From Heterodontus francisci (lineage: Eukaryota): 64,000 bases of DNA. Positions 9,145 through 59,287 of the stretch are shown in pieces; position 1 is the first letter of the stretch, and each line of letters opens with the position of its first letter. Below the pieces are notes generated by a model. The model worked only from the letters and a program-made list of their open reading frames with translations. It made no database searches and was not told the DNA's origin. The stretch is taken from contig NC_090380.1 in assembly GCF_036365525.1 (NCBI RefSeq), forward strand, positions 72,777,757 to 72,841,756, in the 5' to 3' direction. The position numbers were made by a program, and so were the translations under genes.

Positions 9145-9419
9145 GTGAGTTTTTATGAGATGAACGCACATGTTAAAGGTAACTTAACAGATCATTATAA
9201 GAGTTGTGAAAAAGGGTAGAGGAGAAACACAGAACACGGCCTTAGAGGCTGAGTAAGGATAAAAATAACTTAAAGGAAAAGCAGATATATTTTAAAGGCA
9301 CAGGAAACATGTGCCATGAAATTATGCTGCATGAAAATACAGTGAACTCTTAACACATTTAATTGAAATTCCTTTGTCTGGTACTTTAATGGAGGTGTTA
9401 AACTGACAAGAAGGATTTA

Positions 9420-35460: not shown

Positions 35461-35509
35461 ATGGGTGCATTTAGAAACATTGTTCTCAAACTCTGGCTCC
35501 TTGTCTTAG
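35461..35509 (+). CDS. VJ-C1-TM-ITIM receptor, leader exon
   Basis: MGAFRNIVLKLWLLVL(G) with donor G|GTAAGC, phase 1, followed by a 95-bp intron to the V exon. Confidence 0.85.
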
Positions 35510-35604
35510 GTAAGCTTTCACTTTGACTCCAGTTATCAGTAATTCCAGTTGTACTCAGATTATTTGAATTTTATGTTCCTACTTGTTGTAATTTTATGTC
35601 CCAG

Positions 35605-35946
35605 GGCCTGCTGTCGGTCTGGAAGTGATCCAGTCTCCTTCAGTTCTGTCCCTCCTGAGAGGACAGACAGCTCGGATCAACTGCATCCTGATACCCGGAG
35701 AGGAGCGAATGGATTCGGTGAAATATTATTGGTGTAGGGCAAGAGACAATCCTGGCATCGGATGCAACGAAACCAGGAAATTCCTCAATCAAAGCTCTCG
35801 CGTGTCTGTATCGATGCCTCGGGGTTCACTTGTCATTCGGGAGGTGATTGTGGACGATTCCGACACTTACCACTGCCTGGTCCTTAGAGAGAAGCCTCGG
35901 CCCTGGAAAAGCTTCACAGGAGAAGGAACAAAACTGAACATCGAAG
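35605..35946 (+). CDS. VJ-C1-TM-ITIM receptor, germline-joined VJ-type IgV exon
   Basis: Acceptor tcccag and donor G|GTAATT. GPAVGLEVIQSPSVLSLLRGQTARINC...YYWC...SLVIREVIVDDSDTYHCLVLREKPRPWKSFTGEGTKLNIE has a J-like GxGTxL G strand. Confidence 0.92.
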
Positions 35947-36261
35947 GTAATTATGAAATAACAGTAGAACATGCTGGAAATACTCAGCAGGTCAAGCAGC
36001 ATGTGTGAAGAGAGAAACAGAGGTAACATTTCAGGTAGATGACCTTGCTAATAAACTATTAAAGTTCTACCTGCTTCCAGTTCTGATCAGAAGTTTCCAC
36101 CTGAAACGTTACAGTTGCTTCTCTCTCCACATATACTGCCTGATACCTGAAACGTTAACTCTGTTTTTGTCTTCATAGTTGCTGCCAGACCTGCTGAGAT
36201 TTTGCAGCAATTTTTGTTTTTATTTCAGATTTCCAAAATCCGCAGTGTTTTCCTTCTGATT

Positions 36262-36550
36262 CAGGATCTGGACAGGATAGATAGAGAGAAACTATTCCCA
36301 TTGGCGGAAGGGTCCAGAACCACAGGACACCAATTTATGATGAATGGCAAAAGTACCAAGGCAGCATGAAGAAGTAGTTTTGGGCAACCAGTGGTTAGGA
36401 TCTGGAATGCACTGTCTGAGCGTGTAGTGGAGGCAGATTTAATCATAAAGGGAATTGGATAATTATCTGAAGAGAAAATGTTTGCCAGGCCACAGGAAAA
36501 GGCAAGGAGTGGGACTATCTGAGTCGTTTTTGCAGCGCGTCTGCACGGAT
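36262..36550 (+). mobile_element. CR1 LINE 3' fragment
   Basis: 'gatagagagaaactattcccattgg...ggatctggaatgcactg' is a CR1 3' region. Confidence 0.7.
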
Positions 36551-36552
36551 AC

Positions 36553-37372
36553 ATTTTTTTATTCCCAAAATATACTTTATTCATAAAAATCTGTAAAAAA
36601 ATACATGACAAAACAGTTCCAAACAGCACCAAGTCAAAAATTACAAACAGTGCAAAGGAGGTCAGTTTCCTTCAATACAATCATGAGTTGGCTCACAACC
36701 TTTCCATTTCATTTCTCGTGCCATATACATTTTACAGCAAACGAAAATTTTCCCGATACAGTTCGAGGGGTTTTCCATGGATCCAGCCCCTTCGTTCAGC
36801 TTGGTGGGGGGACCTTACACAGTGGTCTTTCCCCATTGAGCCTTTGCTGCGACTGCCCCAAGCTTTAGTGCGTCCCTCAGCACGTAGTCCTGGACCTTTG
36901 AATGTGCCAGTCTGCAACATTCCGTCGTGGACAACTCTGCGCTGGAAGACCAGCAAGTTTCGGGCAGACCAAAGGGCATCTTTCACCGAATTGATAGTCC
37001 TCCAGCAGCAGTTGGTGTTTATCTTGGTGTGCGTCCCTGGGAACAGCCCGTAGAGCAGACTCCTGTGTTACAGAGCTGCTTGGGATGAACCTTGACAAAA
37101 ACCACTGCAGCTCTTTCCACACCTGCTTTGCAAAGACACATTCCAGAAGGAGGTGGGCAACCGTCTCTTCCCCACCACAGCCACCTCGAGGGCATTGTGC
37201 GGAGGGCGTGAGGCTTCGGGCATGCAGGAAGGATCTGATGGGGAGGGCTCTTCTCACCAAGTTCTGAGGCATTCCGCCAAATGACTTTGGTGGTCTGCTC
37301 GGAGAACCATCCGACAGGATCCACCGTCTCCTTTTCCCGTAGGGCCTTGAGGACATTCCGTGCAGACCACTC
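36553..37372 (-). mobile_element. L1/Tx1-clade LINE 3' fragment
   Basis: ALPIRSFLHAR...CPRGGCGGEETVAHLLLECVFAKQVW (zf-RVT-type CCHC), KDALWSARN and an A-rich tail. Confidence 0.8.
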
Positions 37373-37868
37373 AGATACGACGGTCCGAATGTGCTGTAAC
37401 CATTCTATGATTAGATTAACGACCCTGAAATATTTCATTGTGTGGAGAAAGGGAACAGAAATATCTTCACACACAAACTGGCAAGCTTAGTGCACTGGAT
37501 GCCAGAGTACACCAGCGTTTAGCTTCAATGCCACAATAACTATTAAACAACAGGAACTTTCACTTAATTTTCAAAAACTTAGTTTGACGAAAAACAGCGG
37601 AGAGACAACATTGCATAATGCTGATACCAACGCAAAGTCCCGGAATGGTTTTCTGGCTCGTATTTCATTGTATTTCATTGTTATGTGTGTTGCATTTTAT
37701 TATATTTGTCTTGTGATTTGTATATTGATGTATAATTTAATCAAATTGATTCTGCAGTTCCTATTTAGTATCAAACTTGCACATAAGTTTAAATCTTTTA
37801 TATAGTAGCTGTCTATATATTTGCTACAACTCAGATTGATATAATTTGCGTTATTTTAATTAATTTAG

Positions 37869-38168
37869 CGGAACCTGAAGTATCTCTCTCTGCGGATCCC
37901 GAGAATGAAGTTGTTGCCATTCAGACTCTGACTTGTTTGGCTGCGGGATTTTTCCCAAGAGATCTGAACATGTCTTGGTTTGTAACGGGAGATGTCTCCT
38001 ATCAAACAGAACCGGGTTCCCTGATAGAAAACAGTGACAGCACTTACAACCTGAGCTCCCGGCTGCGGATTACAGACATTCACTGGGACCAGGGAACCAC
38101 CGTCACCTGTCAGGTTCAACACGTTACAGTCGTCAGGTCAGCAAGGAAAAGTTTCAGTCACAGCGGAG
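37869..38168 (+). CDS. VJ-C1-TM-ITIM receptor, C1-set Ig exon
   Basis: Acceptor taatttag and donor G|GTAAGT. AEPEVSL...TLTCLAAGFFPRDLNMSW...NSDSTYNLSSRLRI...W.QGTTVTCQVQH is a classic C1-set signature. Confidence 0.93.
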
Positions 38169-38718
38169 GTAAGTTGTTCAGAAAGGGAATAAATGTCACA
38201 GCTCGCTACCCCCAGTTACTGTTAATATATAGGGGTAAAAATAGTAATTTTGTAGAAGCCCGTGTAAAACGCCACACATTAATAGAATTACAAAGACAAC
38301 GCGATGTGAACATTTGGAGATATATAGTCTCAATTTTTAATTCGTAGCAATAAACAAATTGGACTTATAAATAAATTAAATTGATTAAATTCCGACGCTA
38401 TGTTTTATTGGTAAATACTACAGGTCATAATGGTGTGTCGAGAAGGTAAGTGAATTTAAATAGGCAACAATAACCAATTAGACTGAAACACAAACAGCGG
38501 CAAACGCATAGGAGCTGAGAGCAGATATTTATCTCAAACATCGACTGTTCTTTGCACTCTACAGATTCTAACTGACTACCATTTATTTCCTACATTTATT
38601 TTTCTGCTTGTTATTTATACCGACTAGATAGTAACTCCGCTTCTATTAACTATGTTGTACAGCAGAGAATAACTCAAAGAATTATAAAGAATGGAATGCA
38701 AGTATCAACGAGTTTAAA

Positions 38719-39116
38719 TGTTTGTACTTGCGGCTGTTCAATTTTCAGTCTGTTAACACCCTAGCTGTACTAATGCTTTGTCTTTCAACACCTCATTAAC
38801 ATATTGTTTGCCTTTGCTCCATGACCTTCTGGTCAGCTATTCTGTGAACTTGTCCTATTTACACCTTCTCCTTTGTTATCTCTTGCCCCACCCCCACTTT
38901 ACTTGCTTATAACCTTTTACATTTCTAATATTTGCTAAACTAAAAGCAAAATACTGCAGATGCTGGAAAATATTTGCTAGTTCTGAAGAAGGGTCACTGA
39001 CCTGAAATGCTAACTCTGCTTCTCTCTCCTCAGATGCTGCCAGACCTGCTGAGTATTTCCAGCATTTCTTGTTTTTATTTCAGATTTCCAGCATCCGCAG
39101 TATTTTGCTTTTATTA
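38719..39116 (+). mobile_element. Penelope 3' end with hammerhead motif, 16-bp TSD
   Basis: TSD tatcaacgagtttaaa at 38703-38718 and 39117-39132. Contains CTGAAGA-agggtcactgacct-GAAA. Confidence 0.8.
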
Positions 39117-39621
39117 TATCAACGAGTTTAAACCCGTTTTTTCTAATACTAAGTTGGTTTATAAAACAAATCCAGAGTGGAATCGGTTTGAACTCTGAGT
39201 TTTGGTTCGACACGGGTAGTCTTGGTCGGAATGACTGATAAGAGTTGTTAAATGTCATTTGTGTAACTGAAAAGATGCACATTATTAAATTTATTTTATT
39301 TATTCCGGCTTCATGAAGCGACAGAGGAAATGTCGACGGAAACCAGAATGGGTACTGTTCAAGCAATACAAAACAGGCAAATAAAACAACTTCATACAGG
39401 ATATAATGAGAACTCAGTCGCACCGTTGATGCCTCAGAACGGCTACACTACTGTCTCAATTAGCTGGAATTCCATATTTGTAAAGGAAAAATGTAGGGGA
39501 AATAAGGGGGGATTGGAATAAGGGGGGGGGGGGGGGGAATAAGGATGGACAGACAAGTGAGATAGAAGAAAAACAGCGGAAAGACAACATTGCATAATGC
39601 TGATACCAATCCTAACAGGCG

Positions 39622-39824
39622 AACAACTTCATTCTCGGGATCCGCAGAGGGAGGAAGAGACTTCAGGTTCCGCTAAGTTAATTAAAATATATTATATCAA
39701 TCTGAGTTGTAGCAAATATATAGCGCTACTATATTAAAGATTTAAACTTGTGCAAGTTTGATACTAAATGGAACTGCACAATCAATTTGATCAAAGTATA
39801 TATCAATATACAAATCACAAGACA
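39622..39824 (-). repeat. Inverted duplicate of 37707-37915 (intron end, acceptor and start of the C1 exon)
   Basis: Reverse complement matches 'tgtcttgtgatttgtatattg...ttagcggaacctgaag...gcggatcccgagaatgaagttgtt'. It is preceded by a direct copy (~39569-39609) of ~37591-37630. Confidence 0.9.
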
Positions 39825-40552
39825 TGGGCACATACACAGTCGGCCGAATGGTGTCCTCCTGTGCTGTAATTTATATAACTCCCATTAACAACCAGTTGGC
39901 ATAATTCTCAATGAATATAGGAGCTGTGAATAAAGTGCCCACATTTACAATGTGGCGCTTATATTCTGCAGAAAAACGCCCACATCCGCCAAATTTCCGC
40001 TGTAATGATACCAGCAGTGTACAGGCAATCGTCCTGGTCATGTAACACCATTACCGCTCGTTACAGATTAGACCGTCTTAAAATCATTCATCATACTAGT
40101 TTCATTGGTTGTTACAAAGTACGTTGAGATTTTAGATTCTAAGAGAGTACGAGCAAGAAAAAGACACTGAGTTCATTCCTTTACATCTCAGACCACTGAA
40201 AAGCGCTGTCTTTTTTCTGCCTCTGCTCATTAAAGCCCAATTAGTAATATGACTTTAATCCCCAAACTAGACACACTTTTTCAAAAGTATTTAACATATG
40301 GCTGTAACCCATTTCTTCAGGCAACACGTACAAATGAAACAGCAAGATAACAGATTTAAAAACTACAAATATACCGATTAGCCGCAAGCAAGGTTGAAAG
40401 CTATTGTTGCAAAGCTGGAGCGAGCGAGCGCTGGCACATTGTAAACGTACATTTACCGCAAACTTTGCAAAGTCATCTTGGAGAGCAGTGAATTAATGAC
40501 TGATTTAAGAAGTATTCGGGAATGAGAGTACAGGGACCAGCCTTAGGTTGAC

Positions 40553-40876
40553 ATTGGTTGATGCGCAGTGGTTAGCACCGCAGCCTCACAGCTCCAGTGA
40601 CCTGAGTACTGTCTGTGTGGAGTTTGCAAGTTCTCCCTGTGACCATGTGGGTTTCCTCCGGATGCTCCGATTTCCTCCCACAGCCAAAGACTTGCAGGTT
40701 GATAGGTAAATTGGCCATTATAAATTGCCCCTAGTATAGGTAGGTGGTAGGGGAATTGAGGGAAGGTGGGAATGTGAGAGGGTAATGGGATTAATGTAGG
40801 ATTAGTATAAATGGGTGGTTGATGGTTGGCACAGACTCGGTGAGCCGAAGGGCCTGTTTCAGTGCTGTATCTCTAA
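40553..40876 (+). mobile_element. tRNA-derived SINE (HE1/V-SINE-like)
   Basis: Homologous to the other copies. Confidence 0.8.
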
Positions 40877-41239
40877 ACAATAAACAAAATGTTTTTTTTT
40901 CGGTGCACATCAAGTGGCAGTATCACTCAGAAGATTACAGAATGCATCAATATCATCAGGGTCTAAGATTTCCTGGTGGAGGCTGCAAGGCGTTGGTTTC
41001 TGTTTTCAAAATGTGCAGTTTGAATCCGTTTTTTAAATTTGATATTTTATGCGGCTATGAGATATCTGCTAGGCCAGACAACTAACAAAATCTGCCCAAC
41101 TGCTTCAGAAAAGTTTGCAGCACAAAACGGCCCTCAATATAAATCGCTTCGCATATGAAGTCAAGGAGCTGAGTCTCATAGAATATGGGCTTGCTGTAAC
41201 AATTCGTAGGTATCGCCAACATTTACAAACAGACAGCAA

Positions 41240-42570
41240 CAAGCTAGTCTCAGTAACTGTGACCATGAAACTACCAGATTGTCATTAAAAACCTATCTGG
41301 TTCACTAATGTCCTTTAGGGAAGGAAATCTGCCGTCCTTACCTGGTCTGTCCGACATGTGATTCCAGTCCCACAGCAATGTGGTTGACTCTTAACTGCCC
41401 TTTGAAGTGGCCCAGCAAGCCACTCCATTGTACCAAACTGCTGCAGAACAGTCGAATAAGAAGAAAACCGAATGGACCACCCAGCATCCACCTAGGCATC
41501 GGAAACGGCAACAGCAAACCTGCCCGGTCGACCCTGCAAAGCCCTCCTTACTAACATCTGGGGGTTTATGCTAAGATTCTGAGAGTTGTCCCACAGGCTC
41601 GTCAAGCAACAGCCTGACATAGTCAAACTCATGGAATCATACCTTACAGACAATGTCCCAGACACTGCCATCACCATCCCTGGGTATGTCCTGTCCAAAG
41701 GCAGAACAGACTCACCAGAGGTGGCAGCACAGTGGTATACAGTCGAGAAGGAATTGCCCTGGGAGTACTCAACATTGACTCTGGACCCATTGAAGTCTCA
41801 TGGCATCAGGTCAAACATGGGCAAGGAAACCTCCTGCTGATTACCACCTACCACACTCCCTCAGCTGATGAACCAGTACTCCTCCATGTTGAACACCATT
41901 TGGAAAAAGCACTGAGGGTAGCAAGGGCACAGAATGTACACTGGGCAGGGGACTTCAATGGTACAAGAGCAGGTCAGAGGCTGGGAATTCTGTGGTGAGT
42001 AACTCACCTCCTGACTCCCCAAACCTGTTTACCATCTACAAGGCACAGGTCAGGAGTATGATGGAATGCTCTCCACTTGCTTGGATGAGTGCAACTCCAA
42101 CAACACTCAAGAAGTTTACCATTCAGGACAAAGCAGTCCAATTAATTCGTACCCCACTCATCACCTTAAACATTCACTCCCTCCACCACAGATGCACAGT
42201 GGCAGCAGTGTGTACCATCTACAAGATGCACTGCAGCAACTCACTAAGGCTCCTTTGACAGCACTTTCCAAACCTGTGACATCTACCACCTAGAAGGACA
42301 AAGGCAGCAGATGCATGGGAATACCACCATCTGCAAGCTCCCTTCCAAGCCACATACCATCCTGACTTGGAACTATATTGCTGTTCCTTCACTGTCACTG
42401 GGTCAAAATCCTGGAACTTCCTTCCTAACAGCATTTTGGAAATAATGGCACCAGATAGACTGCAGCAGTTCAAGAAGGCGGCTCACCACCATTTTCTCAA
42501 GGGCAGTTAGGGATGGGCAATAAATGCTGGCCTAGCCAGAGATGCCCACATCCCATGAAAGAATAAAAAA
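41240..42570 (+). mobile_element. CR1-like LINE, internally deleted (endonuclease start joined to 3' end)
   Basis: LVKQQPDIVKLMESYL...IPGY...GDFN endonuclease motifs joined to TIYKAQVRSMME.SPLAW and the shared tail. Confidence 0.8.
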
Positions 42571-42745
42571 TATATAATTTAGAAATTATTGAAGATGGAT
42601 GTGAATGCTCAAGGTATGAGATTTATTTTCAACAATATTTATATAGCATCTCTAACATAGTAAAACATCCCAAGATGTTTCACAGGAGTGTTATCAATCA
42701 AAATGTGACACTGAACCACATTTAAAAAGCAGATAAAATGCAATA

Positions 42746-43312
42746 AAAACAGAACGTGCTGGAAATACTCAGTAGGTCTGGCAGCACCAGTGAAGAGAGA
42801 AGCAGAGTTAGCGTTTCAGGTCTGTGACCTTTCATCAGAACTGGCAAAGGTTAGAAGTATAGGTTTTAAGCAAGTGAAGTGGGGCTGGGGGTGGGGAGAA
42901 GAGAATGAAAGGGAAGTTGTGTGATAGGCAGAGGGCAGGAGAGATTAACTGACAAGGAGGTCATGGGGCAAAGGTAAAGGGAGTGTGCTAATGGTGAGGT
43001 GCAAGACAAAGCATTAGTGCAAAGAGTGTGTTAATGACAGAATAATGAACAGCTCTTTCCAAAAACACAAACATGAAAAGCCATGATTAGGGCAGGCATG
43101 TGTAAAAAAAAATGATAAAACAAAATAAAATGCAATAATAAAAAAGGGGGCCAATCATGCCCTGAAATTATTGAACTCAATGTTCAGTCCGGAAGGCTGT
43201 AGAGTGCCTAATCGGAAAATGTCCCTCCAGATTACGTTGATGTTCACTGCAACACTGCAGCAAGCCCAGGACAGAGATAGGGACATGAGAACAGGATGGT
43301 GAATTGAAATAA
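42746..43312 (-). mobile_element. Penelope 3' end, 13-bp TSD
   Basis: IFRLGTLQPSGLNIEFNNF. TSD ataaaatgcaata at 42733-42745 and 43313-43325. Confidence 0.85.
42803..42845 (-). ncRNA. Minimal hammerhead ribozyme motif of the Penelope element
   Basis: Reverse complement ccagtt-CTGATGA-a-aggtc-aca-gacct-GAAA-cgcta-actctg has the conserved core, stem II and a short stem I (agtt/aact). Confidence 0.65.
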
Positions 43313-44817
43313 ATAAAATGCAATACCCTAGCAATCCCAACCCCCATTTTATTTCCAAACTAAAGCAATTTCGTAACTGAGGTAATCTGCATTCTCACAT
43401 AAAGATAGTTGGTGCTCTCACACCAAGGAACACCCACGTTATCTCAAGAAGGTGGGTGCAACCACTCGTTAAGAAAAGAAACCTTCCCATGAAACAACAA
43501 TCAGGCATGCTCCAAATAATTCCTTCAATGAAAATTGAAGCTTTATCTTATTTGTTATAAATAACTTTGTTTTAGTGGACATTAAATAAACACACCTATA
43601 AATGTGACTCTCAGAAACTATCAGCTCTTTTCCAGTTGTTAACCTTAAGTTTATACCTAAGAAAGAATGAGAGAATGTAGCATCTAATTGATTTCAGTTC
43701 TATCCTTTGATCAGTTTTGACCTGACAGGCTCCACTTCCAACCTTCAAATGATCTGATTGATTAGACTGACAACCTCCAATGCAGGCAAAAATAAAGTTC
43801 AAGTTTCTTTTTGAAACATTTCTGTCGGTTGAAATACTGATGGTTGTCATGTATGCATTGATCCAAATCAAAAAAAACGCAAACCATCTTTAGGAGGTAG
43901 TCTTGCTAATATTACAGTTGGACTTCGACAAATCTGTGGCATGAGGGAATGGGAAGGAGAAAGAATGCATGAACATTGTAAAGCAGTTCTGCAATTAGCC
44001 AGCATAATTTGAGCAGGGAGCTGAAGTTATACTGCCCACTTCAAGCCTGTGAAACTGCTGTAGGAGGGGTGAGAGGTGGGGGGAAAGGGTTCAGTAAAGG
44101 AATGGTAGAGCATTGGTTTCGTGCACTCAAGTACACACAGATAATTTGCTTATTATTATCTGGCCATGTTAAACTTATTACTGATTATGAAGTGTTAGAG
44201 ATTGGAAGGACAGCTTAGGCTTTAAAATTATTTTTTAATATCTATACAGTTAGTTAGTACAAAGTGAAAATATCATAAGACCATTTCTTAGGGAGTCAGT
44301 ATGTCACTATTTATGTCATGTGATTTTGGGTGTGCTTCAATTAAAAGTGGTAATATAATTCAGCAAGCTACTCAATACACTTAAACGACGAGGTGTGACA
44401 CCCCTCCAGGCAGTGATAGAATCACTTGTGAATAATAAGACTGTTACCATAGAGACTCCATGGTGGAATGGGCCTTCTCCTTCAACCAATAAAAGACTGC
44501 TTCTTTTCTTTGGGGGTTATCAGTAGAAATAGGATAATGCATGATTATGTAATAATACTGTTTCTACAAATGAAGTATTATTGACATTGATCCTCTATGA
44601 AGGTCCTGCTGTGGAAGTCTTTTGGTATATTTCACAAGAACAAGTCAACTCAACAACTCAAAAATGACATGTCAATTTCTGATTCAATATATGTTTTAAA
44701 TAATATGTCAGAAGATGTGTATTTAAAATTATTGCATGTAATGTAGTAAGCAATGGTAATGTTAGTAATTAATTGCTGCTATTGGTTTTGATTCATATTT
44801 CAATTGTATTTCTGAAG

Positions 44818-44922
44818 GCTTTTCCAAGTACTCTTACTTCAGCCTGCTGAGTCTTATCCTTATTGTACCATTTTGTCTTTGGATCATCAAGAGTCATTGC
44901 TGTAAACTGAAGATTGAGAAAG
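44818..44922 (+). CDS. VJ-C1-TM-ITIM receptor, transmembrane exon
   Basis: Acceptor tttctgaag and donor G|GTAATC, phase 1-1. GFSKYSYFSLLSLILIVPFCLWIIKSHCCKLKIEK has a ~20-aa uncharged hydrophobic span followed by a basic/Cys stop-transfer segment. Confidence 0.8.
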
Positions 44923-45590
44923 GTAATCAGATACAATATACATTGTATTTTGAAACTGAATTAAATATATCAAAAGCAAAAATTGTATTTAAATCCTGGA
45001 AAAAAATAAATCCAACAATAATAATCATAAAAAACGATTTCATATTCCCACAGGCCAGTGACAGTACTATTATACCACTGTGTACCAGCATAGATATAAA
45101 AGGCAGATCTTGCTTGACTAATTGAATTTTTTGATGAAGTAACAGAAAAGGTTGATAAAGGGAAGGCAATGAATGTTGTCTATATGGATTTTAAGAAAGC
45201 ATTTGACAAAGCAGCAAATTAAAGGCTGGTTAAAAAAGTTGAGGCTCATGGAATAGGAGGGTCAGTATCAGCTTGGATAAAAAAAATTGGCTTCAGGACA
45301 GAAAACAGCGAGTCATGGTAAATGGTATTTTTTCAGACTGGAAGATGGTAGACAATGGAGTTCCCCAAGTGTCAGTGCTATGACCACTGCTTTTTGGATA
45401 TAGATAAATGATGATACCAAACTTGGAGATGTGGCAAACAGTGAGGATGATACCAATCAATTGCAACGGGACATAGATATGCTCGTAGAATGGACAGACA
45501 AGTGGAAGATAGAATTTAATACAAAGAAGTGTGAGGCGATGCATTTTGGCAGAAGGGATAGGGAGAGGTAATATAGACTTAATAGCACAG

Positions 45591-47204: not shown

Positions 47205-47328
47205 ACAGTTCAAAAGAGTGTGCTGGGACAGAGAGACCTTGGGTTCATGTGCATGGAACTTTGGAGGTGGCGGGACATATTGAGGAATACTTAGCAAAAC
47301 ATATGAGATCTTGCAGTTCATAAATAGA

Positions 47329-50300
47329 AGTCTTCTTTGGCCTCCTTGTCTTGAAAGACAATGGGTAAGCGCCTGGAGGTGGTCAGTGGTTTGTGAAGCA
47401 GCGCCTGGAGTGGCTATAAAGGCCAATTCTAGAGTTACATACTCTTCCACAGGTGCTGCAGATAAAATTGGTTGTCGGGGCTGTTACACAGTTGGCTCTC
47501 TCCTTGCACTTCTGTCTTTTTTCCTGCCAACTGCAAAGTCTCTTCGACTCGGCACGCTTTAGCCCCGCCTTTATGGTTGCCCACTAGCTCTGGCGATCGC
47601 TGGCAACTTACTCCCACGACTTGTGATCAATGTCACAGGATTTCATGATGCGTTTGCAGATGTCTTTAAAGCGGAGACAAGGACGGCCGGTGGGTCTGAT
47701 ACCAGTGACGAGCTCGCTGTACTATGTGTCCTTGGGGATCCTGCCATCTTCCATGCGGCTCACATGGCCAAGTCATCGCAGGCACCGCTGGCTTAGTAGG
47801 GTGTATATGCTGGGGATGTTGGCCCCCTCAAGGACTTCTGTGTTGGAGATACGGTCCTGCCACCTGATGCCAAGGATTCTCCGGAGGCAGCGAAGATGGA
47901 ATGAATTGAGACGTTGCTCTTGGCTGACGTACGTTGTCCAGGCTTCGCTGCCCAGAGCAAGGTACTGAGGACACAGGCTTGATACACTTGGACTTTTGTG
48001 TTCTGTGTCAGTGCGCCATTTTCCCACACTCTCTTGGCGATTCTGGACATAGCAGTGGAAGCCTTTCCAATGCGCTTGTTGATTTCTGCATCGAGAGACA
48101 GGTTACTGGTGATATTTGAGCCTAGGTAGGTGAACTCTTGAACCACTTCCAGAGCATGGTCGCCGATATTTATGGATGGGGCATTTCTGACGTCCTGTCC
48201 CATGAGGTTCGCTTTCTTGAGGCTAATGGTTAGGCCAAATTCAGTGCAGGCAGCTGCAATCCTGTCGATGAGTCTCTGCAGACACTCGTCTGTGTGAGAT
48301 GTTAATGCAGCATCATCAGCAAAGAGGAGTTCCCTGAAGAGGACCTTCCGTACTTTGGTCTTCGCTCTTAGATGGGCAAGGTTGAACAACATGCCCCCTG
48401 ATCTTGTGTGGAGGAAAATACCTTCTTCTGAAGACTTGAATGCATGTGAGAGTACCAGGGAGAAGAAGATCCCAAACAGTGTAGGTGCGAGAACACAGCC
48501 CTGTTTCACGCCACTCAGGATAGGAAAGGGCTCTGATGAGGCGCCGCTATGCTGAATTGTGCCTTTCATATTGTCATGGAATGAGGTGATGATACTTAGT
48601 AGCTTTGGTGGGCATCCGATCTTTTCTAGTAGTCTGAAGAGACCACGTCTGCTGACGAGGTCAAAGGCTTTGGTGAGATCAATGAAAGCAATGTAGAGGG
48701 GCATCTGTTGTTCACGGCATTTCTCCTGTAGCTGGCGAAGGGAGAACAGCATGTTAATGGTGGAAATCTGATTCCAGCATCCGCAGTATTTTGCTTTTAT
48801 GTTAATGGTGGATCTCTCTGCTCGAAATCCACACTGTGCCTCAGGATAGACACGCTCAGCCAGCTTCTGGAGCCTGTTTAAAGCGACTCGAGCGAAGACT
48901 TTCCCCACTATGCTGAGCAGGGAGATTCCACGGTCGTTGTTGCAGTCACCGCGGTCACCCTTGTTCTTATAGAGGGTGATGATATTGGCATCGCGCATGT
49001 CCTGTGGTACTGCTCCCTCATCCCAGCACAGGCAAAGCAGTTCATACAGTGCTGAAAGTATAGCAGGCTTGGCACACTTGATGATTTCAGGGGTAATGCC
49101 GTCCTTCCCAGGGGCTTTTCCACTGGCTAGAGAATCAATGGCATCATTGAGTTCTGATTTTGTTGGCTGTACGTCCAGCTGATCCATGACTGGCAGAGAC
49201 TGGGCTGCATTGAGGGCGGTATCAGTGACAACATTTTCCCTGGACTACAGTTCTAGGTAGTGTTCCACCCAGCGGTCCATTTGCTTGCAATGGTCAGTGA
49301 TTGTGGCCCCTGATTTAGGTTTGAGGGGGGCAATCTTCTTGATGGTTGGCCCAAAAGCTCTCTTAATGCCATCATACATTCCTCTGATATTTCTGGTGTC
49401 AGAGGCCAGCTGAATATGACTGCATAGGTATTGCCAGTAGTCATTTGCACAGCGCCTTGCTGTTCTTTGTGCAGTGCTTCTGGCTGCTTTAAGTGCTACG
49501 GATGTTAACTCACTGGGGGCTTTCTTGTAGTTCAGCAGTGCAATGCACTTAGCGGCTATGACAGGTTCCAGTTCTTCAATGTGAGATTGAAACCAGTCTG
49601 CATTCCGCTTCACACGTTTGCCATAGGTGGTCATTGCTGAGTCATAGATGGCGTCTCTGATGTGGGCCCATTTGGTGTCTGCACCCCCTGTGGGAGTGTT
49701 TTGAATGGCTTTTTCAAGTGAATTTAGAAACTTACGTAACAGCTGTGGATGAGAAATTCTGCTAGTGTTGATGCGCGGGCGGCCCTTCTGCTTGGAGTGA
49801 TGCAGCTTCTTTGGTTTGAGGCTAACCTTGCTGCACACCAGGGAGTGGTCGGTGTCGCAGTCCGCACTGTGGAAGCTGCGTGTGATTTAAACGCTGTTTA
49901 AAGAGGCTCGCCTTGTGACGATGAGTTCCAGCCGGAACCAACGACGTGATCTTGGGTGCCTCCAAGAAACCTGGTGACAGGGTTTTGTGTGAAAGAATGA
50001 GTTGGTGATGCAGAGGTTATGATAGCTACACAACTCAAGCAGTCTCTGTCCATTCTCATTCATCCTACCAATGCCATAGCGCCCAAGGCAGGAGGGCCAT
50101 GAGTCATGGTCGGCCCCAACCCTGGCATTAAAGTCCCCCAGTAGGAACAGGTGTTCGGTGTTGGGGATGCTACTAATGTTATTATGGAGTTCCTCGTAGA
50201 ACTGGTCTTTCGCTTCAGGTGCGGAGCAGAGTGTTGGAGCATAGATGCTGAGTAGGTGTACTAGACCAGAGGCGGTGAACAGTCAGATGGACAGTATGCG

Positions 50301-50470
50301 TTCCGAGCCATTTGAGGGTGGCTCTATCATTCTGAGCAAAGAGTTTCTGATGGCGAAGCCCACTCCATGCTGTCTTGGTTCCTCAGGATCCCTACCCTGC
50401 CAGAAGAAGGTGTAGTCTTGCTCTCTTAGAGATTCGCTCGCAGGGAGGCGTATCTCCTGAAGTGCTGCAG
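47329..50470 (-). mobile_element. RTE-clade (BovB-like) LINE, near-full ORF region (APE endonuclease + RT)
   Basis: 464-aa RT ORF, endonuclease motifs (IYAPT, LGDFNARVG, DTDHSLV) and high similarity to 3397-5800. Confidence 0.92.
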
Positions 50471-51349
50471 TATTGATTACAAAAGCAGGGAAGTTATGCT
50501 GAACCTTTATAAAGCTCTAATTAGGCCCCAACTAGAGTATTGTATCCAGTTCTGGTCACCACGTTTTAGGAAGGATGTGAGGATCCTCGAGAGGGTACAG
50601 AGGAGATTTACCAGAATGGTTCCAGGGATGAGGGATTTTAGCCACAAGGTGTGGTTGGAGAAGCTGGGGTTGCTCTCCCTGGAGCAAAGGGCATTGAGGG
50701 GAGATTTGATAGAGATGTACAAGATTATGACAGATTTAGATAAGGTAGACAAAAAAAAACTGTTCCCATTAGCTGATGGTGTAAGGACTGGGTGACACAG
50801 ATTTAAGGTTTTGGGCAAGCGATGGAGGGGGTTGTGAGGAAGAACTTTTTACACAGCAAGTGGTAATGACCTGGAACTCACTGCCCATGAGGGTGGTGGA
50901 AGCGGAGACAATCAACGATTCCAAAAGGAAATAGGATAAGCACTTGAGGGAAATAAACTTGAAAGGGCATGGGGATAGAGCTAGAATGCGACTGATTGGA
51001 TTACTCTACGAGAGCTGGCATGGACTCGATGGGCAAATGGGCTCCTGTGCCATATTGATTCTATGACTCTATTACTCTATTCCATCTGAAATTCACCTTT
51101 TGGAAAAAATACATTAACATAACCCGTAAAATTAATATTGTAGAGCTAAGGGAACTGTTCTAACACAGGTTGATGTGGAAAATTTTGACAGAGCTGAATA
51201 TAAATATCTTTGCATCCAAATATCCTTTCCAAGCTTTCATGTGTAAATGATGAAGCCTGAAATATATTATGTTAAAAATGGGAACAGTAATACTCATTTA
51301 GCATTTAAAAGTTATAAGCTGTGAAACTGGACAGGGTCTGAAAGTAGGC

Positions 51350-54300
51350 TTGGGTAACGCAGTGCATAATTAATCAGCGCCTGTTGCTTCCAATACAGGC
51401 AGCAGGCATGCTTCACACTGCTTACTGATTATCATTATAGTTACGTGCAGCCTGTGCTAAATGTACTGCTGAGTGGCTTCGTGCCTCAGCAGCGGGCCAA
51501 AGTTTGTGCAACCCGCACCTCTTTATGGGAAGGTGCATTCTGCCTGGAATAGGTGATAGAACTGGTTTCAGAAGAGGGTGTGAGCAAGAAGAACACTGAA
51601 TTATGGCATAACAAGGCAGAAAATGGGCTCCCAATTTCTCTGACACTGCATTGGAGGCCTTGCTAGAGGTGACAGGAGGAGAGGAGCCCTCTTCCCTCAG
51701 GGTGCCAGGAGGCCCTTCAGACAAACTGCGTGAAGGCACTGGGAGCAGATAGCTGTGGCGTTCAATGCCAGGACTCTAGCCCTGAGGACCTGGATGTAGT
51801 ACCTGAAGAAGTCCAATCACCTCATGCAAATGGTCAAGATCAGTGAATTCATCTTCATATGTCAAATCCTACCAAAGGCACCATGATCCTCACACACAGC
51901 TTAATGCACCACATCCCCATCACTCACATACTAATAATCTCTATCAGTTACGCCTGATACCTAACGTTCATAGCTTCACCTCACCCTCACACACTTCGCA
52001 CTGCTGCCAGCCTCACACTCACATCTCACAGCATGCACGCACTGCCAGCTATTCAACCATGACAGCTCCATAACCCAAACACATTGCACAACATGCACTG
52101 ACACACTTTCCTCCCTCCTGCAGGACAAGGTGCTGTATAACTAGAGACATCAGCATCTAACTAGAGGAGTCAGACACGGCTGAAAATCCTTACATTCATG
52201 GAAGAGACAATGCTCATCATTACTGGAACGGCCATGACTGAAGCCGTAGCCAACAGTGGGGCTGAAACCACTGAAGATGATGATATGCTTTTTTTTAACC
52301 CTCCTTCTCATATCCCACTTCCACCTCATACCACACTCTCCCCTGATTTACAAGTTGCAGATGGTATAAGCACGCACTTCTTTCTTTCCTCCTTCCTTCA
52401 CTACAACCCTACTCTTATGTCTTGCTGCTTTCAGATAGCCAAGAACTGCAATTTGATCAGCCAGTGATGGAAGAGAAGGAGGTGGAAGAGCAAGAGACAG
52501 TGTTTAAGAAGAAACATCATCACTTGCTCTTACATTCACAGCCATCAGCTCAGATACTGATACTTGACGAATTTTAGAGCATAGCTTAGAGTGCACATGG
52601 TAAGACACTGGGCATAAATGGCCTGCAACCAGGGCAGAGGACAAGGGTAGCACAAATGCCAGCTCATAGGAGGCCGAGGTCGCACATGCATTCTGTTGCA
52701 GACGACTCAGATGAAGATTTCGATGGGGTGGCCTACAGAAGTAGGCTGATGGATAAGAAGACTGAAATGCTTGGTGCATTGGCAGGCTTGTCAATGTCAA
52801 GAAGCATGGAAGAGTCCAGCTCCAACTTTGTATAGGGCTTTGTGCAGAGCTTGGAGCCCATGCTGTCCAGCTTGGATGTATGACCAACTCCATGAGAACA
52901 CTTGCGGACTCAGCCATGAAATAGCATCTGTTTCCTGATGCCTCAGCTCCAATGCAGCACAAGTAGAAACCATTTACCATCTGGGTTCCACAGTGGAAGC
53001 TCAGACTGAAGTCATGCAAACTCAGCTTGCTACCACACAGCTTCTGACAGCTGCCATCAAAGCTATGACTGCCAGTATTCAAGGGGGCTTGCAGGGTGTC
53101 ACAGCAGTCCAGTAATCTGTCCTCCATCACATTGTTCTTATTGTGGAGGCACTGCCCTGGGAAAGTGGCAGTGACTCTGTGGAGCAGGAACCTGCTGTCC
53201 TCTGTCAGGATGATAGCATTCTTCCTCCCAGCACTGCTATTCAACCAGTGCCACTGCTGTTGCTTGTCAACCAGCCAGCGCAAACTGCTGCTGCCCATGC
53301 AAAGGTGGTGCAGTCCAAAACTGGGGGTTTTAGGACCAGAGGTGCTTGAGTGCATCCTGCAAGGCCATCTGCAGTCTCCCCCACTGAAAGTCAGCAGCTT
53401 TCACCAACCATGCTGCAGCCAATACTGGGGTAGCACTTCGTAGGAACATAAGGATAATCAAAGCCACATGGAAGACAGGTATTAAGGGAATGTACAAGGG
53501 TGAATACTTGACTTTTGTATACCATGGTTAATGCCTGGTTGATTTATAAATTTGATTTGGAATGTTTGTTTTCTGGTGGCTTCTATTTCAGCATTGTGGC
53601 CAAGAGGATGCTGCATTGGTCAGTAAGAGAGGGACAGGAAGGTGTGGGAGTGTTGGTGGCTTATTGCTGTTGGCGAATTGGGGTTATGTGCACTGGTACT
53701 GCAGACAGATGAACCGATCATGGACAGCCAAGCCGGAAAGAGGCTGTGCTGGTTGCCTCCTCCTTTCCTCCTCCTCTTCCTCATCTTCTCCTCCTCCGCG
53801 GGTCACTGCATGGCTGGTGACTGCTGTTCACTTACAATGACCCCATTGTGCAGCATGCAGCAAACAACAATGATTCTTGACATGTGCTCTGCCGAGTACT
53901 GCAGGGCTCCTCCACAGCAATCCACGCAGCGGAAGCATTATTTAAGCAATAATCTGCTGTATCACAGTTTTTGTGGCAGCATGGCTTTCATTATAGGAAT
54001 ACTGCCCATTTGTGTTTGGGTTGCACACTGGAGTCATGAGCCAGGTGATCAGTCCCTAAAACAAAAGCAAAATACTGCGGATGCTGGAAATCTGAAATAA
54101 AAACAAGAAATGCTGGAGCCACTCAGCAGGTCTGGCAGCATCTGTGGAAAGAGAAGCAGAGTTAACGTTTCGGGTCAGTGACCCATCTTCGGAACCCAAT
54201 CAGTTCCGAAGAAGGGTCACTGACCCGAAACGTTAACTCTGCTTCTCTTTCCACAGATGCTGCCAGACCTGCTGAGTGGTTCCAGCATTTCTTGTTTTTA

Positions 54301-55010
54301 TTTTATATTAGTGGATAGTCCCTGTTGCCCAGTAGCCACCTTCAGGTTTATTGTGGTGGCTCAAATGCTGTGGTACGGTGGACTGCCGGAGAATAAAGGC
54401 ATCATGACTGCTGCCAGGATACCGGGCATTGACCTGCATGATACGCTGTGTATGGTTGCACACCAGCTGGATATTGAGGGAGTGGAATTCCTTCTGGTTG
54501 TGGTAGAGTTGTCAGAGTTGACAAGTCCTGCCTGCAAAGGGTGTGGATTCAATGAATGGCATCCTGCACCATAGGGAAGCCTGCAATCCTTGCAATTCAG
54601 CATCTCACTCTGCCTGCTTCTTTCTAGCAAGACAGAATGAAATATTGATAGCCCCCTTAGAATACAGAGTCTCAGTGACCTCCCTTATGCAACAGTGGAT
54701 GGAAAACTGGGAGATGATGCAAATATCACCTGGTGGGGAGGTATTTCCTGCTCCTAAACTCGTGTTCAGCTGTGTGAGGTTATGTGAGGGATTTAGCTGG
54801 AGCATTGAGCTCCAAACTGGCAGCACTGGTGTCAAACCTATGCTACACGCTGACTGACATGGCAAATGCCTCTGTTCATGTGCTAACACCCTCACCAAAA
54901 TGGCGTCTGGTGCAGCTAGCTCCAAAAATGTGCATGCACACAGTGGCTGCCATTTTGGAGGCAAACCGGCTCTCATAATGCCTAAAAGCCAGGTGCTGTG
55001 GGTCCAAATT
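51350..55010. mobile_element. PIF/Harbinger relic: Myb/SANT gene (+) and transposase (-)
   Basis: 'cccaatttctctgacactgcattggagg...tgggagcagatagct...aggacctggatg' Myb start. The minus strand carries [16 protein letters not shown] and ALQYSAEH...CCMLHNG transposase remnants. Confidence 0.7.
54063..54300. mobile_element. Hairpin-shaped Penelope terminal fragment
   Basis: Inverted repeat centred on 'cttcggaacccaatcagttccgaag', inserted into the Harbinger transposase. Confidence 0.85.
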
Positions 55011-57314
55011 TTGCGACCATAGATTCTTTTTATTGTTGCGGCTCACTACATACATCACAATACTATATGTTGCCTTAAAACATTTCTAATGTTCATGATA
55101 TTCTTATAGATTCATCGATCCATGGCAAAAATGTTGATGATCAAATAATGGGAAAATTGAAGAATGAATCAGTAAATGAAGTGAGTATATTGTTTTGATC
55201 TTTTTCCTACTCTGCATGAACTGGCGCTGTGTAGAACTGAATGCATTATAAAATATTGTCAGCTCATTTAAATAAATTGTCAACACTCATTGAAATGATG
55301 CACTGGAACCACAAAGGCGACAGACTATCCAGTGTCATTGGACTATTTTTTAACCACCTGGGTGTTAAGGGAGTGCAGCGAGGAAAGTTGGGTGTGGAGG
55401 ATCGCATCACTGCTCATTTTCCCTTTCAGCATTAGCTGCGAATGTCTGATAGAGGCTGAAGATTGGAATGTGTCCTGGAATGTAGCTGATTGAGATAAAA
55501 GTCTCTGCTCCAGGTGTGCTATACCCACACACTTGATACAGGTCAATGCAGAAACTCTTACCTTAGCAAGGTGGATTTCTTTTCCCCATCTGGCCAGCAG
55601 ACCTGGATCTATACATGGGAGGGTGCCTTTAAATCATTGTGACCTCCTCCCAAACAGCTAGGCTTTGTGCCCTTCTTTCCCAAAAAGAACAGCCCTTTTT
55701 AGCTGCACTTCTTCCAGAAGAGTTCTATAAAGGCTGAGTCAAAAAAAGTTGGTTGTCTTTTCACTTGGCCTAGGCCTGCTTCCAAATAAAGCTATCTTTA
55801 ACTTGATTTCAATAAGTTTCTGCTGCCAAATGTAACCTATTCCTAGTGCTGCAGTGTTCCTTTAAATAGCATTGGCAGCAAATTCTACTGAACTATTGCT
55901 CTGCTGAGTATATCACTGCTACAATTAGCACAGGGTTCCATGAATAATTATGTGAATAAGCAGACTTTGAAATGTCACAGAAGGTCTCTTCTGTGTTCTT
56001 TTATTGTGAGTTGAGCTCACAGTATCCAATCTAGGCTGTAATTAGCTAAGACAGGAAAATATACCCTTAAGTTACAAGCCTTCCAGGATGTCCAAGCACT
56101 ACTGATATTAACAAATAGGTCAGACTGGGACTATTAATACACTTCTTCATAAATTTTCCAAACAGATATTTTGGGACCAATGCTGAAGTAAGACTGAAGC
56201 CGACTGGTCTTTTATTCAGTGTTTTGGTAATCTGGGGAAATACCAAGGTGGAGGTGCGGTGACGGTGGTGGTTGGGGAGGGTGTCTATCTCTCCAGGACT
56301 GTCATTTATTTAGTTCTAACTCTTTTTGCCCTTCGTTAGAAAATGTTAGCATCATAAAAATTACAAACCACCAGCAACTGAGGAATATTCTCTGAAATAA
56401 TAATAAACATCTATGAAAGCAATGGTACCAGGAGTTTGCATTGGATCTCAGACTTGTCAACTAATTATTCCAGGATGTAAAACAATGAATTGCGGACCTC
56501 AAAAAAATCTTTGTCGTTTTAGTTGGTACCTGACCTGCTTCAGATGAATGACAATACTGCTGTTGGATACTCATGTGCTACAATGGTACAGCTGGTTTAA
56601 GTAATTCACATTTAATGAACTATTTTACTTTACATGTCTGCTGGAAGTTAACCATTAATGAACCCCTCTTTGAAGTTCTGTAATTTTTTTAATTAGTTGT
56701 CGTTCTACTACTCCTGAATGCATTTACTTGCACCGGAGTATGTCTCCACAGTCACAGTCGCTGTCTCATAACTCGTCCAGATGGCTTTTCTTTAGGTGTT
56801 AATCTAGGCCATGAACATTAAAACATTGTTTGACCAATGGGGCCATCATGGCCAAATCCAATCATGCAAGTGTGTGCACAGACACAATCATGCACATACT
56901 TTTCAGCAGGAGTCATTGGGAAACATTCAGGAGTAAAAACATTTTTCTGTCTCTAGAAGAGTAACACTCAGGCCAACTGAACTGCCTCAGCTGATGCCAG
57001 ATAGAGATCAGGGAATCAAAACTGCAATTTTCAGGTCTGTATGGATTAATAAACACAGGGTGATGCTTTACCCAGTAGACCATCACTGAATGTGTTGTAG
57101 GAGAGAGTGATTTGAGGTGGCTCTGTCTCTGGCACATATTGGATGGGTGGTACTCCACCTACCCAATAATATCGGCTGGAGGCCTGATCAATTTTAATGA
57201 TCAGGTTTCACTTAAATACAATAGGTGAACTGTCAACACTAATCATAGTGCTTAAAGGGGGCATGCTGCTTGGGAGAGTCAGATGTCCAGTGGGCTGGCC
57301 ACCATTTTTTAAAT

Positions 57315-58520
57315 TCTTTCACAGGATGTGGACATCGCTGGCTAGGACAGCATTTATTGCCCATCTTTAATTGCCCTTGAGAAGGTGGTGGTGAGTTATC
57401 TTCTTGATCCGTTGCAGTCCAAGTGGTGTAAGTACATCCACAGTGCTGCTAGGAAGGGTTTTAGGATTTTGACCCAGCGACAATGAAGGAACGGCAATAT
57501 AGCTCCAAGTCAGAATGGTGAAGGGGAAGTTGCAGGTAGTGGTGTTCCCATGCATCTGCTGCCTTTGTCCTTCTAGGTGGTAGAGGTTGTGGGTTTGGGA
57601 AGGTGCTGTCGAGGGAGCCTTGGTGAGTTGCTGTATTGCATCTTGTAGATGGTTAACACTGCAGCCACTGTGCATCAGTGGTGAAGGGAATCAGTGTTGA
57701 AGGTTGTGGATTGGGTGCCAATCAAGCTGGCTGCTTTGTCCTGGATGCTGTCAAGCTTCTTGAGCATTGTTGGAGCTGCGCCAATACAGGCAAATGGAGA
57801 GTATTCCATCACACTCCTGACTTGTGCCTTGTAGATGGTGGACAGGCTTTGGAGAGTCAGGATGTTCGTTACTCGCTGCAGAATTCCTAACCTCTGACCT
57901 GCTCTTGTAGCCACGGTAGTCAATGGTAACCCTCAGGATATTGATAATGGGGGATTCAGTGATGCTAATGCCATTGAATGTCAAGGGAAGATAGTTGAAT
58001 TCTCTCTTTTCGGAGATGGTTATTGCCTGGCACTTATGTGGCGCAAATGTAACTTGCCACTTATCAGCCCAAGCCTGAAAGTTGTAAGATCTTGTTGCAT
58101 CTGGACATGGACTACTTCAGTATCTGAGGAGTTGTGAATGGTGCTGAATATTGTGCAATCATCAGTGAACATCCCCACTTCTGACCTTTTGGTAGAGGGA
58201 AGGTCAGTGATGAAACAGTTGAAGATGGTTGGGCCTAGGACACTACCCTGAGGAACTCCTGTGGTGATGTCCTGGGACTGAGATGATTGACTTCCATCAA
58301 CCACAGCTATCTTCCTTTGTGCTAAGTATGACTCCAACCAGCAGAGAGTTTTCTCTCGATTACCATTGACTCCAATTTTGCTAGAGCTCCTTGATGCCAC
58401 ACTCAGTCAAATGCTGCCTTGATGTCAAAGGCAGTCACTGTCACCTCACCTCTTGAGTTCAGCTCTTTTGTCCATGTTTGAACCAAGGCTGTAATGAGGT
58501 CAGGAGCTGAATGGCCCTGA
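57315..58520 (-). mobile_element. CR1-like LINE 3' part
   Basis: GVPQGSVLGPTIF...MFTDDCT, TIYKAQVRSVMEYS and the shared tail. Confidence 0.85.
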
Positions 58521-59025
58521 TTTTAAAGACATCCCACAGTCCTTAAAGGTGAAGTTCACTTTTCAAAGTTCATTACTGAGGCAGTAAGCAGCATGACATT
58601 AGTCAGGGTCCCTGATTCTCCAATTCAGCTGTGGAGGTGCTGATAAACAGGAAGGAAGTCTTCTTTAACAGCAAAGGTCAGCAGGTACCCTGGCAAATTA
58701 GCCAGCAACAGTGGAGAGGGAAGGCTGTGTACAACAATCAATGATTCTAGTGCAATAACAATCAGGTAGGGTCATTACACAGCCTGCAATTCACCCTGTC
58801 AGATGACTGCGCAGGCAGTGAAGTCAGAAATTTACAGTTTACTGCTTGCCATTGGATGTTTGCTATTGGAGTTGGATTATTGACATTTCCATGTGGCTTT
58901 GCATTGCACAACAGGAAAGTGGAATTTATGCTAAATTAAGGTCAAGACAAATATTGAAAAGTAGCGTGTTTATAATTATTTAAGCGTGTGTGTTCTTATT
59001 GTTCTTTCTTATTACTGTGCTACAG

Positions 59026-59268
59026 GGTAATGTTTCTTTCAGCAGTGAAACTCTGCATTATGCATCTGTTCATGTCAGCAATCCTGTAAAGAAGAAGCAA
59101 AAACAGGAATTGAAACGACCAGAGCGGGACCAAGCATCTGAATATGCTGTTCTAAAGGTCAAAGATAAAAATAATCCGTTCTGTGAAGAATCGGTACATT
59201 GCTCCGCTGTTAGCATTTGCCCCACATCAAATAGAAGGCAAACTGCTAACTACACTGCAACCACATGA
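59026..59268 (+). CDS. VJ-C1-TM-ITIM receptor, terminal cytoplasmic exon with ITIMs
   Basis: Acceptor gctacag. GNVSFSSETLHYASVH...RDQASEYAVLK...* contains ITIMs LHYASV (59053-59070) and SEYAVL (59137-59154), with AATAAA at 59282. It starts in phase 0, so an intervening exon is needed after the phase-1 TM exon. Confidence 0.8.
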   Translation, partial: GNVSFSSETLHYASVHVSNPVKKKQKQELKRPERDQASEYAVLKVKDKNNPFCEESVHCSAVSICPTSNRRQTANYTATT

Positions 59269-59281
59269 GTTTCGCTTAAAC

Positions 59282-59287
59282 AATAAA
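59282..59287 (+). terminator. Candidate polyadenylation signal
   Basis: AATAAA 13 nt after the stop codon; further copies near 59346 and 59518. Confidence 0.45.

Follow-up and report, generated by a model that had tools for sequence, protein, structure and literature searches.

A stretch of 64,000 nucleotides from the horn shark Heterodontus francisci (contig NC_090380.1, positions 72,777,757 to 72,841,756 of the forward strand; hereafter the window) carries a six-exon gene for a receptor with one variable-type (V-set) and one constant-type (C1-set) immunoglobulin (Ig) domain. We propose that this gene is, with good probability, the intact, transcribed inhibitory half of a paired, non-rearranging V-C1 receptor belonging to a SIRP-like family. 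Its predicted product is a 369-amino acid type I membrane protein with a split signal peptide, a V-set domain, one C1-set domain, an uncharged transmembrane (TM) segment and a tail with two immunoreceptor tyrosine-based inhibitory motifs (ITIMs). The gene lies on the plus strand, and its features are as follows, all coordinates being positions in the window.

35461..35509, plus strand: coding exon 1, with the leader start (MGAFRNIVLKLWLLVL-), the ATG at 35461 and a GT donor at 35510; ends in phase 1
35510..35604, plus strand: intron 1 (the 'split leader' intron), 95 bp, GT..AG
35605..35946, plus strand: coding exon 2 (variable-joining, VJ), 342 nt, with the leader end, the V-set domain and the J-like strand FTGEGTKLNIE
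37869..38168, plus strand: coding exon 3 (C1), 300 nt, with LTCLAAGFFPRDLNMSW, YNLSSRLRI and VTCQVQH; phase 1 to phase 1
44818..44922, plus strand: coding exon 4 (TM), 105 nt, encoding FSKYSYFSLLSLILIVPFCLWIIKSHCCKLKIEK; phase 1 to phase 1
55110..55180, plus strand: coding exon 5 (first cytoplasmic exon, cyt1), 71 nt, DSSIHGKNVDDQIMGKLKNESVNE, borders AG/GT; phase 1 to phase 0
59026..59268, plus strand: coding exon 6 (ITIM), cytoplasmic tail with two ITIMs, stop at 59266-59268
59053..59070, plus strand: ITIM 1, LHYASV, read from the sequence
59137..59154, plus strand: ITIM 2, SEYAVL, read from the sequence, its tyrosine 28 residues from that of ITIM 1
59194..59211, plus strand: decayed third tyrosine motif, VHCSAV, with a Cys codon at 59200-59202, from the orthologue alignment
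59266..59286, plus strand: TGA stop and in-frame relic VSLKQ*, the tblastn alignment of two orthologues crossing the stop

The exon borders are AG/GT throughout this model, and the six joined exons reproduce RefSeq protein XP_067896840.1 residue for residue (369 aa), an entry named 'immunoglobulin kappa light chain-like isoform X1' from Heterodontus francisci. Exon 1, which encodes a hydrophobic leader in 49 nt, corresponds to residues 1-16 of that protein and is identical to them. Exon 4 specifies a short stalk, the TM helix YSYFSLLSLILIVPFCLWII, which carries no charge, and the stop-transfer sequence KSHCCKLKIEK; it is separated from the C1 exon by an intron of 6.6 kb. Exon 5 was located by tblastn with the orthologues described below (71-79% identity), and the 3' untranslated region extends past 59400. 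The locus is thus an intact horn-shark gene. Other candidates for the TM exon between 38 and 59 kb were rejected, being hydrophobic stretches in transposon debris with unmatched splice phase, and no further Ig exon was found between 38169 and 59025. No other Ig exon or paralogue in the window belongs to the gene. The window holds just two upstream B7-like exons and, in the intron about 1.4 kb downstream of the C1 exon (39577-39648, minus strand), an inverted 24-residue copy of that exon's beginning (SADPENEVV...).

The V domain scored 36.9 bits against the Pfam V-set profile (cut-off 26), and the second domain scored 62.9 bits against C1-set (cut-off 21) and just 20.3 bits against C2-set_2. 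The germline J-like motif TGEGTKLNI, of the G-x-G-T-x-L type, lies inside the V exon, so that V and J form a single open exon, unlike the separate segments of rearranging receptors, which are flanked by recombination signal sequences (RSS). No RSS heptamer or nonamer was found near the V exon and no heptamer-spacer-nonamer arrangement in 35000-60000. Both LHYASV and SEYAVL match the ITIM consensus. The AlphaFold2 (AF2) model predicts a helix at residues 234-260, an ectodomain with predicted local distance difference test (pLDDT) values mostly of 70-95, and a disordered tail; there is no cysteine between the C1 domain and the TM segment for an interchain bond. A weak Pfam match of the tail to DUF4578 (E 0.00095, below the cut-off) was discarded, no literature on it having been found.

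A first, sequence-only reading of this DNA had described five exons, each open in frame. All five are real, correctly positioned and bordered by AG/GT, and its account of their content has held up, namely a leader split by a 95-bp intron, a V exon with a J-like strand and no RSS, one bona fide C1-set domain, an uncharged TM segment and two ITIMs. The five exons cannot, however, be joined in frame, because phase 1 at the end of the TM exon does not fit phase 0 at the start of the ITIM exon; the sixth exon, 55110-55180, is needed to restore the frame. The same reading had suggested looking for a spliced transcript that joins the V and C1 exons to the TM and ITIM exons, and the RNA data bear out the downstream part of this chain.

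RNA contigs were examined over 55000-59400; parts of this region are present in four runs, of which X1 to X3 come from one sample. Contigs of runs X1 (1697 nt) and X2 (1063 nt) cross the junction 55180->59026 (GT..AG) with zero mismatches and exactly omit 55181-59025, and they therefore represent spliced RNA. Positions 59026-59400 are likewise covered without mismatch, and the contig depth of the transcript is good. Upstream of 55108, the X1 contig has an overhang of 139 nt that closes with the final 30 nt of the TM exon, so that the TM, cyt1 and ITIM exons are joined, in this order, in one contig. Since the overhang is longer than the TM exon (105 nt), the contig must enter another exon upstream; the part of the overhang that was read is its last 30 nt, in which the link to the C1 exon, and with it the join to V/C1, is not directly visible. 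The horn-shark gene is transcribed.

The V exon was searched against 1.8 billion representative proteins and gave four strong relatives at 54-72% identity, from a sawfish, a catshark, a stingray and an electric ray. A follow-up search added more orthologues, including Heterodontus francisci proteins whose exons match the window at 100%. At least 13 elasmobranch species have orthologues with their parts in the same order, among them the sharks Scyliorhinus canicula, Mustelus asterias, Heptranchias perlo, Stegostoma tigrinum, Rhincodon typus, Hemiscyllium ocellatum and Cetorhinus maximus, and the rays Pristis pectinata, Hypanus sabinus, Mobula birostris, Mobula hypostoma, Narcine bancroftii and Hemitrygon akajei. 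Their automatic NCBI names are inconsistent. Most are SIRP-alpha-like or SIRP-beta-like, such as 'tyrosine-protein phosphatase non-receptor type substrate 1-like' (equivalent to SIRP-alpha-like) and 'signal-regulatory protein beta-1-like'; 'immunoglobulin kappa light chain-like', 'Ig heavy chain Mem5-like' and 'T cell receptor beta chain-like' are also used. In the alignment the Hypanus and Mobula orthologues possess two near-identical C1 domains (V-C1-C1).

Outside the elasmobranchs, a caecilian 'SIRP-alpha-like' protein (XP_029433897) is collinear with the sevengill-shark orthologue, V, C1, TM and all four tail tyrosines included (E 5e-34, 27% identity). This relative matches end to end, and the family is therefore not limited to cartilaginous fish. 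A search with the caecilian protein returned itself as the sole match, and a search with the family profile returned family members and weak unrelated matches only. A second VJ-C1-TM family, found in Callorhinchus and Pristis, is 26-28% identical to the horn-shark family; its members have a short tail ending in a single G/AIYxxL, are automatically named 'Ig lambda-like' or 'kappa light chain-like', and may constitute another non-rearranging receptor lineage.

The horn shark also possesses a putative activating twin of the receptor. This protein, XP_067896079.1 (261 aa), falls in the same 90% cluster as XP_067896840.1, and its ectodomain is 96.9% identical to that of the inhibitory receptor. 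Its TM segment differs in the presence of an arginine (DGFVPAIIRYLTIFVGMSLLLSAVICVQICK; PAIIRYLTIF), and it has almost no tail. The sawfish (Pristis) has an equivalent inhibitory/activating pair, 96.8% identical, and activating forms that share the IP.I.R motif of the TM segment occur in two rays. Ectodomain identity is 65-77% between species versus 97% within a species. Judging from these sequences, the inhibitory/activating split is old and the ectodomains are kept alike within each species; because of this difference we infer gene conversion or repeated duplication as the cause of the likeness. The combination of an inhibitory and an activating form is the classic paired-receptor design.

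Most shark orthologues carry four aligned tail motifs, LHYASV, TEYAVL, V(H/Q/D)YS(T/A)V and T(T/I)Y(A/V)SL. ITIM 1 is kept in most shark and ray orthologues and aligns with HYACV of the caecilian relative, and ITIM 2 is (T/S/K)EYA(V/A/I)L in nearly all orthologues (TVYAAL in Pristis). The horn shark lacks the third motif, its tyrosine having changed to cysteine (codon 59200-59202), as well as the fourth, which is preceded by the TGA at 59266 with the old C-terminus VSLKQ* still readable behind; other sharks continue through T(T/I)Y(A/V)SL to the later stop. In addition, RefSeq lists an isoform X2 in both the horn shark and the sevengill shark in which the TM exon is missing and C1 is joined to the cytoplasmic exons. 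Exon 4 runs from phase 1 to phase 1, and its skipping therefore preserves the frame. This isoform of two species may be a conserved soluble form, though its junction was not seen in the listed RNA read evidence.

Perhaps the lost motifs and the TM-less isoform mean that the horn-shark inhibitory copy is decaying or changing its role, its main product being either a receptor of weak inhibitory effect or a soluble protein that acts as a decoy for the twin. We regard this as improbable. Both membrane-proximal ITIMs are intact at their spacing of 28 residues, and one ITIM pair at such spacing suffices for SHP binding in other receptors; the sole upstream junction seen in the reads, TM to cyt1, belongs to the membrane form; and the reading frame is otherwise intact, with a transcript at the depth noted above.

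For the receptor as an inhibitory half of a pair we propose the following mechanism. The V-set domain with its built-in J strand is the presumed ligand-binding face. Binding of ligand would cluster the receptor, Src-family kinases would then phosphorylate both ITIM tyrosines, and the phosphorylated pair would dock the tandem Src homology 2 (SH2) domains of SHP-1 or SHP-2, which would damp activating signals in the same cell. The twin XP_067896079.1 would recognise the same ligand, its signal passing through an adaptor that bears an ITAM (immunoreceptor tyrosine-based activation motif), and the TM-skipping isoform would yield a soluble form.

Upstream of the receptor gene, and also on the plus strand, lies a B7-family gene represented by two exons, IgV at about 1520-1858 (region 1466-1900) and IgC at about 8829-9155. 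In PDB the IgV exon is matched best by VTCN1/B7-H4 (4gos, E 3.5e-15), with B7-H3 nearly tied, and the IgC exon matches the butyrophilin-type Pfam profile C2-set_3 at 56.6 bits. This B7-H4 (VTCN1)/B7-H3-like gene is the sole neighbour within the window, where no synteny with the SIRP cluster was found. Human VTCN1 is situated at 1p13 and the SIRP cluster at 20p13; the receptor gene would adjoin a B7-H4-like gene, as at human 1p13. B7 genes have historically been linked to the major histocompatibility complex (MHC).

Remains of transposons abound in the long introns and in the flanks (47796-49187, 58023-58400, 3730-5014 and 32405-33058, all on the minus strand). Open reading frames (ORFs) of the long interspersed element (LINE) reverse-transcriptase type gave RVT_1 scores of 94.9 and 39.6 bits, and a Harbinger-type DDE_Tnp_4 fragment scored 65.5 bits; the ORFs at 3730-5014 resemble a LINE ORF by eye. 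A repeat at 57.2-58.5 kb is very abundant in the RNA contigs of all four runs. At 23231-24749 on the minus strand there are fragments of a gammaretrovirus-like provirus, Gag p30 (77.6 bits) and a murine leukemia virus-type integrase C-terminal domain (45.2 bits). These two lie within 1.5 kb of each other, and the provirus is therefore heavily deleted.

Several points weigh against our proposal that the gene is the inhibitory half of a SIRP-like pair. The V exon alone gave no SIRP match at E 0.01 or better; it matched V domains of IgNAR, light chains and the T-cell receptor (TCR) at E of about 1e-4. When the family profile was compared with PDB, the best match was shark UrIg2 with 179.5 bits in three stretches, ahead of SIRP-alpha with 142.3 bits. 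The likeness to SIRP depends on architecture more than on sequence. Since two of the four tyrosine motifs are gone from the horn-shark copy, its signalling may be weaker. The RNA evidence consists of contigs from one sample, which do not show the V/C1 exons and the ITIM exon on one molecule. Which ligand the receptor binds, which cells express it, and its SHP binding and adaptor pairing are alike inferred.

The C1 exon matched Ig heavy-chain constant domains, UrIg2 and SIRP-gamma alike in PDB. Lower scores of the family profile were 129.2 bits for SIRP-gamma and 127.5 bits for a light chain, the number of domains differing between these targets. SIRP-alpha (2wng) was aligned to the profile over V and C1 in one contiguous stretch of 142 bits. 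In the ESM Atlas the nearest named clusters were SIRP-alpha (score 0.96, 200-206 of 256 features). Foldseek on the AF2 model gave TCR beta and Fab light chains as the best matches (E about 1e-14, 23-28% identity), and VIA-align placed B7-H6 at the top (Z 15.0), followed by many two-domain ectodomains of the Ig superfamily at Z 12-14. For the predicted structure, neither Foldseek nor VIA-align separates SIRP from the other candidates.

It is possible, if on balance doubtful, that the gene is a true (co-)orthologue of tetrapod SIRPA/SIRPB, derived like them from one gnathostome gene, whose second C1 domain was lost, or never gained, in sharks, and which probably binds a CD47-like ligand. The names that the NCBI pipeline gave to most orthologues, the V-C1-C1 order in rays, the four-tyrosine tails together with the activating twin, the contiguous alignment with 2wng and the ESM Atlas clusters all agree with such descent, to which the collinear caecilian relative would form a bridge. 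The silence of the V exon does not, nor do the scores of UrIg2 and Ig chains, which equal or exceed those of SIRP, nor does a B7-H4-like neighbour whose human counterpart is at 1p13 instead of 20p13. The ray C1 pair also argues the other way: its members are near-identical tandem copies, which looks like a recent exon duplication and not like the old D2/D3 pair.

The leading match to UrIg2 raises another explanation, one that we think unlikely, namely that the gene represents a separate, old germline VJ-C1 lineage in an MHC-paralogous region, akin to UrIg/UrIg2, PRARP or an antigen-receptor precursor, which acquired its ITIM tail and its pairing independently of SIRP. The IgNAR, light-chain and TCR matches of the V exon, the Foldseek results and the B7-family neighbour would suit this origin. 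The UrIg2 score is, however, inflated by three C1 domains and by the shark origin of the target, and the four-tyrosine tail and paired activating form suit SIRP better. The architectures differ as well: the non-rearranging VJ-C1 genes already described from sharks are UrIg and UrIg2 (Flajnik et al., PMC12227049; PDB 9dmx), UrIg being a secreted homodimer with three C domains made in the liver and UrIg2 having nine or more C domains plus TM and cytoplasmic exons (PMC12227049). The UrIg2 paper mentions neither SIRP nor ITIM (PMC12227049). With little confidence, one could go further and regard the family as an elasmobranch survivor of an ancestral germline VJ-C1 lineage that lay beside B7 genes in the proto-MHC or its paralogues. 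If that were true, a signalling paired receptor, and not a secreted antibody-like protein, would stand near the root of the antigen receptors.

Our own reading is that the gene functions as part of a SIRP-type pair and is a member of a SIRP-like family, its orthology to tetrapod SIRP being unproven. The RefSeq name 'immunoglobulin kappa light chain-like' is a mislabel in the horn shark. If we are correct, sharks and rays retain a SIRP-like brake/accelerator receptor pair with, in sharks, a single C1 domain and, in the horn shark, a B7-H4-like gene alongside. Among living animals with antibodies and TCRs the cartilaginous fish are the oldest, and it is therefore chiefly through their germline VJ-C1 genes that the target of the RAG transposon can be studied. 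Proper placement of the family, by phylogeny and by chromosomal position, could show whether SIRPs date to the first jawed vertebrates, and also whether they arose in an MHC-paralogous region.

The interpretive part of the sequence-only reading is borne out in part. The gene does encode a non-rearranging leader-VJ-C1-TM-ITIM receptor. Its comparison of the ectodomain with TCR and light chains agrees with the Foldseek matches, UrIg2 being the best PDB match of the profile. The supposed restriction to cartilaginous fish is contradicted by the caecilian protein, and the opinion that the receptor fits none of the known types cleanly by the SIRP-like names, the V-C1-C1 rays, the four tyrosines and the activating twin. 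The evidence leans towards a SIRP-type family, which the reading itself had named among the outcomes that would refute it. The synteny with the MHC or its paralogon that it had proposed to check yielded a B7-H4-like neighbour in the window and not a gene of the SIRP locus. As for the receptor being undescribed, our literature search found no paper describing a shark or ray SIRP-like family, but the gene is already annotated in RefSeq and its orthologues are widespread. Nothing found here places the gene nearer to a pre-RAG ancestor than SIRP or UrIg. A kinship of a V-C1 receptor bearing an ITIM tail with the antigen-receptor precursor is in print for SIRP-alpha, having been suggested in 2009 for its V-C1-C1 ectodomain (PMC2785349). 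The evolutionary idea is thus not new.

Among the known systems, PRARP is listed with the Ig superfamily members that have a germline-joined VJ domain (PMC11599192) and is described as an MHC-linked VJ gene (PMC10751288), whereas the horn-shark gene adjoins a B7-H4-like gene. With UrIg and UrIg2 it shares a non-rearranging VJ in a single exon, a split leader, C1-type domains and an occurrence in sharks and rays; it differs from them in its single C1 domain, its ITIM tail and its activating twin, and from the secreted UrIg also in its TM segment. The chains of TCRs and the light chains of Ig have the same V-J-C1 order and split leader, a likeness echoed in the RefSeq name, but in the horn-shark gene VJ is one exon without RSS, the TM segment is uncharged, the tail bears ITIMs and no interchain cysteine is present. 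NKp30 (NCR3) has one VJ domain, lacks a C domain and carries a charged TM segment, in contrast to the C1 domain and uncharged TM segment found here.

Mammalian SIRP differs from the shark receptors in having two C1 domains instead of one, and lysine instead of the arginine of the shark activating TM segment. Chicken SIRP-alpha, too, reportedly has one V and one C1 domain (attributed to Viertlboeck et al. in 2006). The horn shark, moreover, keeps two ITIMs only, its V exon taken singly shows no detectable similarity to the SIRP V domain, and its neighbour is B7-H4-like and not a SIRP-locus gene. On the other side, the tail of mammalian SIRP-alpha (SHPS-1) has four tyrosines, as do those of the shark and ray orthologues, and the V-C1-C1 order is found in rays, there with near-identical tandem C1 copies. 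Each system pairs the inhibitory form with an activating twin, nearly identical to it in the ectodomain and with a basic residue in the TM segment, represented in mammals by SIRP-beta1 and in the horn shark by XP_067896079.1. Both likewise combine a V-set domain carrying a germline J motif with a C1-set domain, a TM segment and an ITIM tail, which in mammalian SIRP recruits SHP-1/2 (PMC12975943, PMC2785349).

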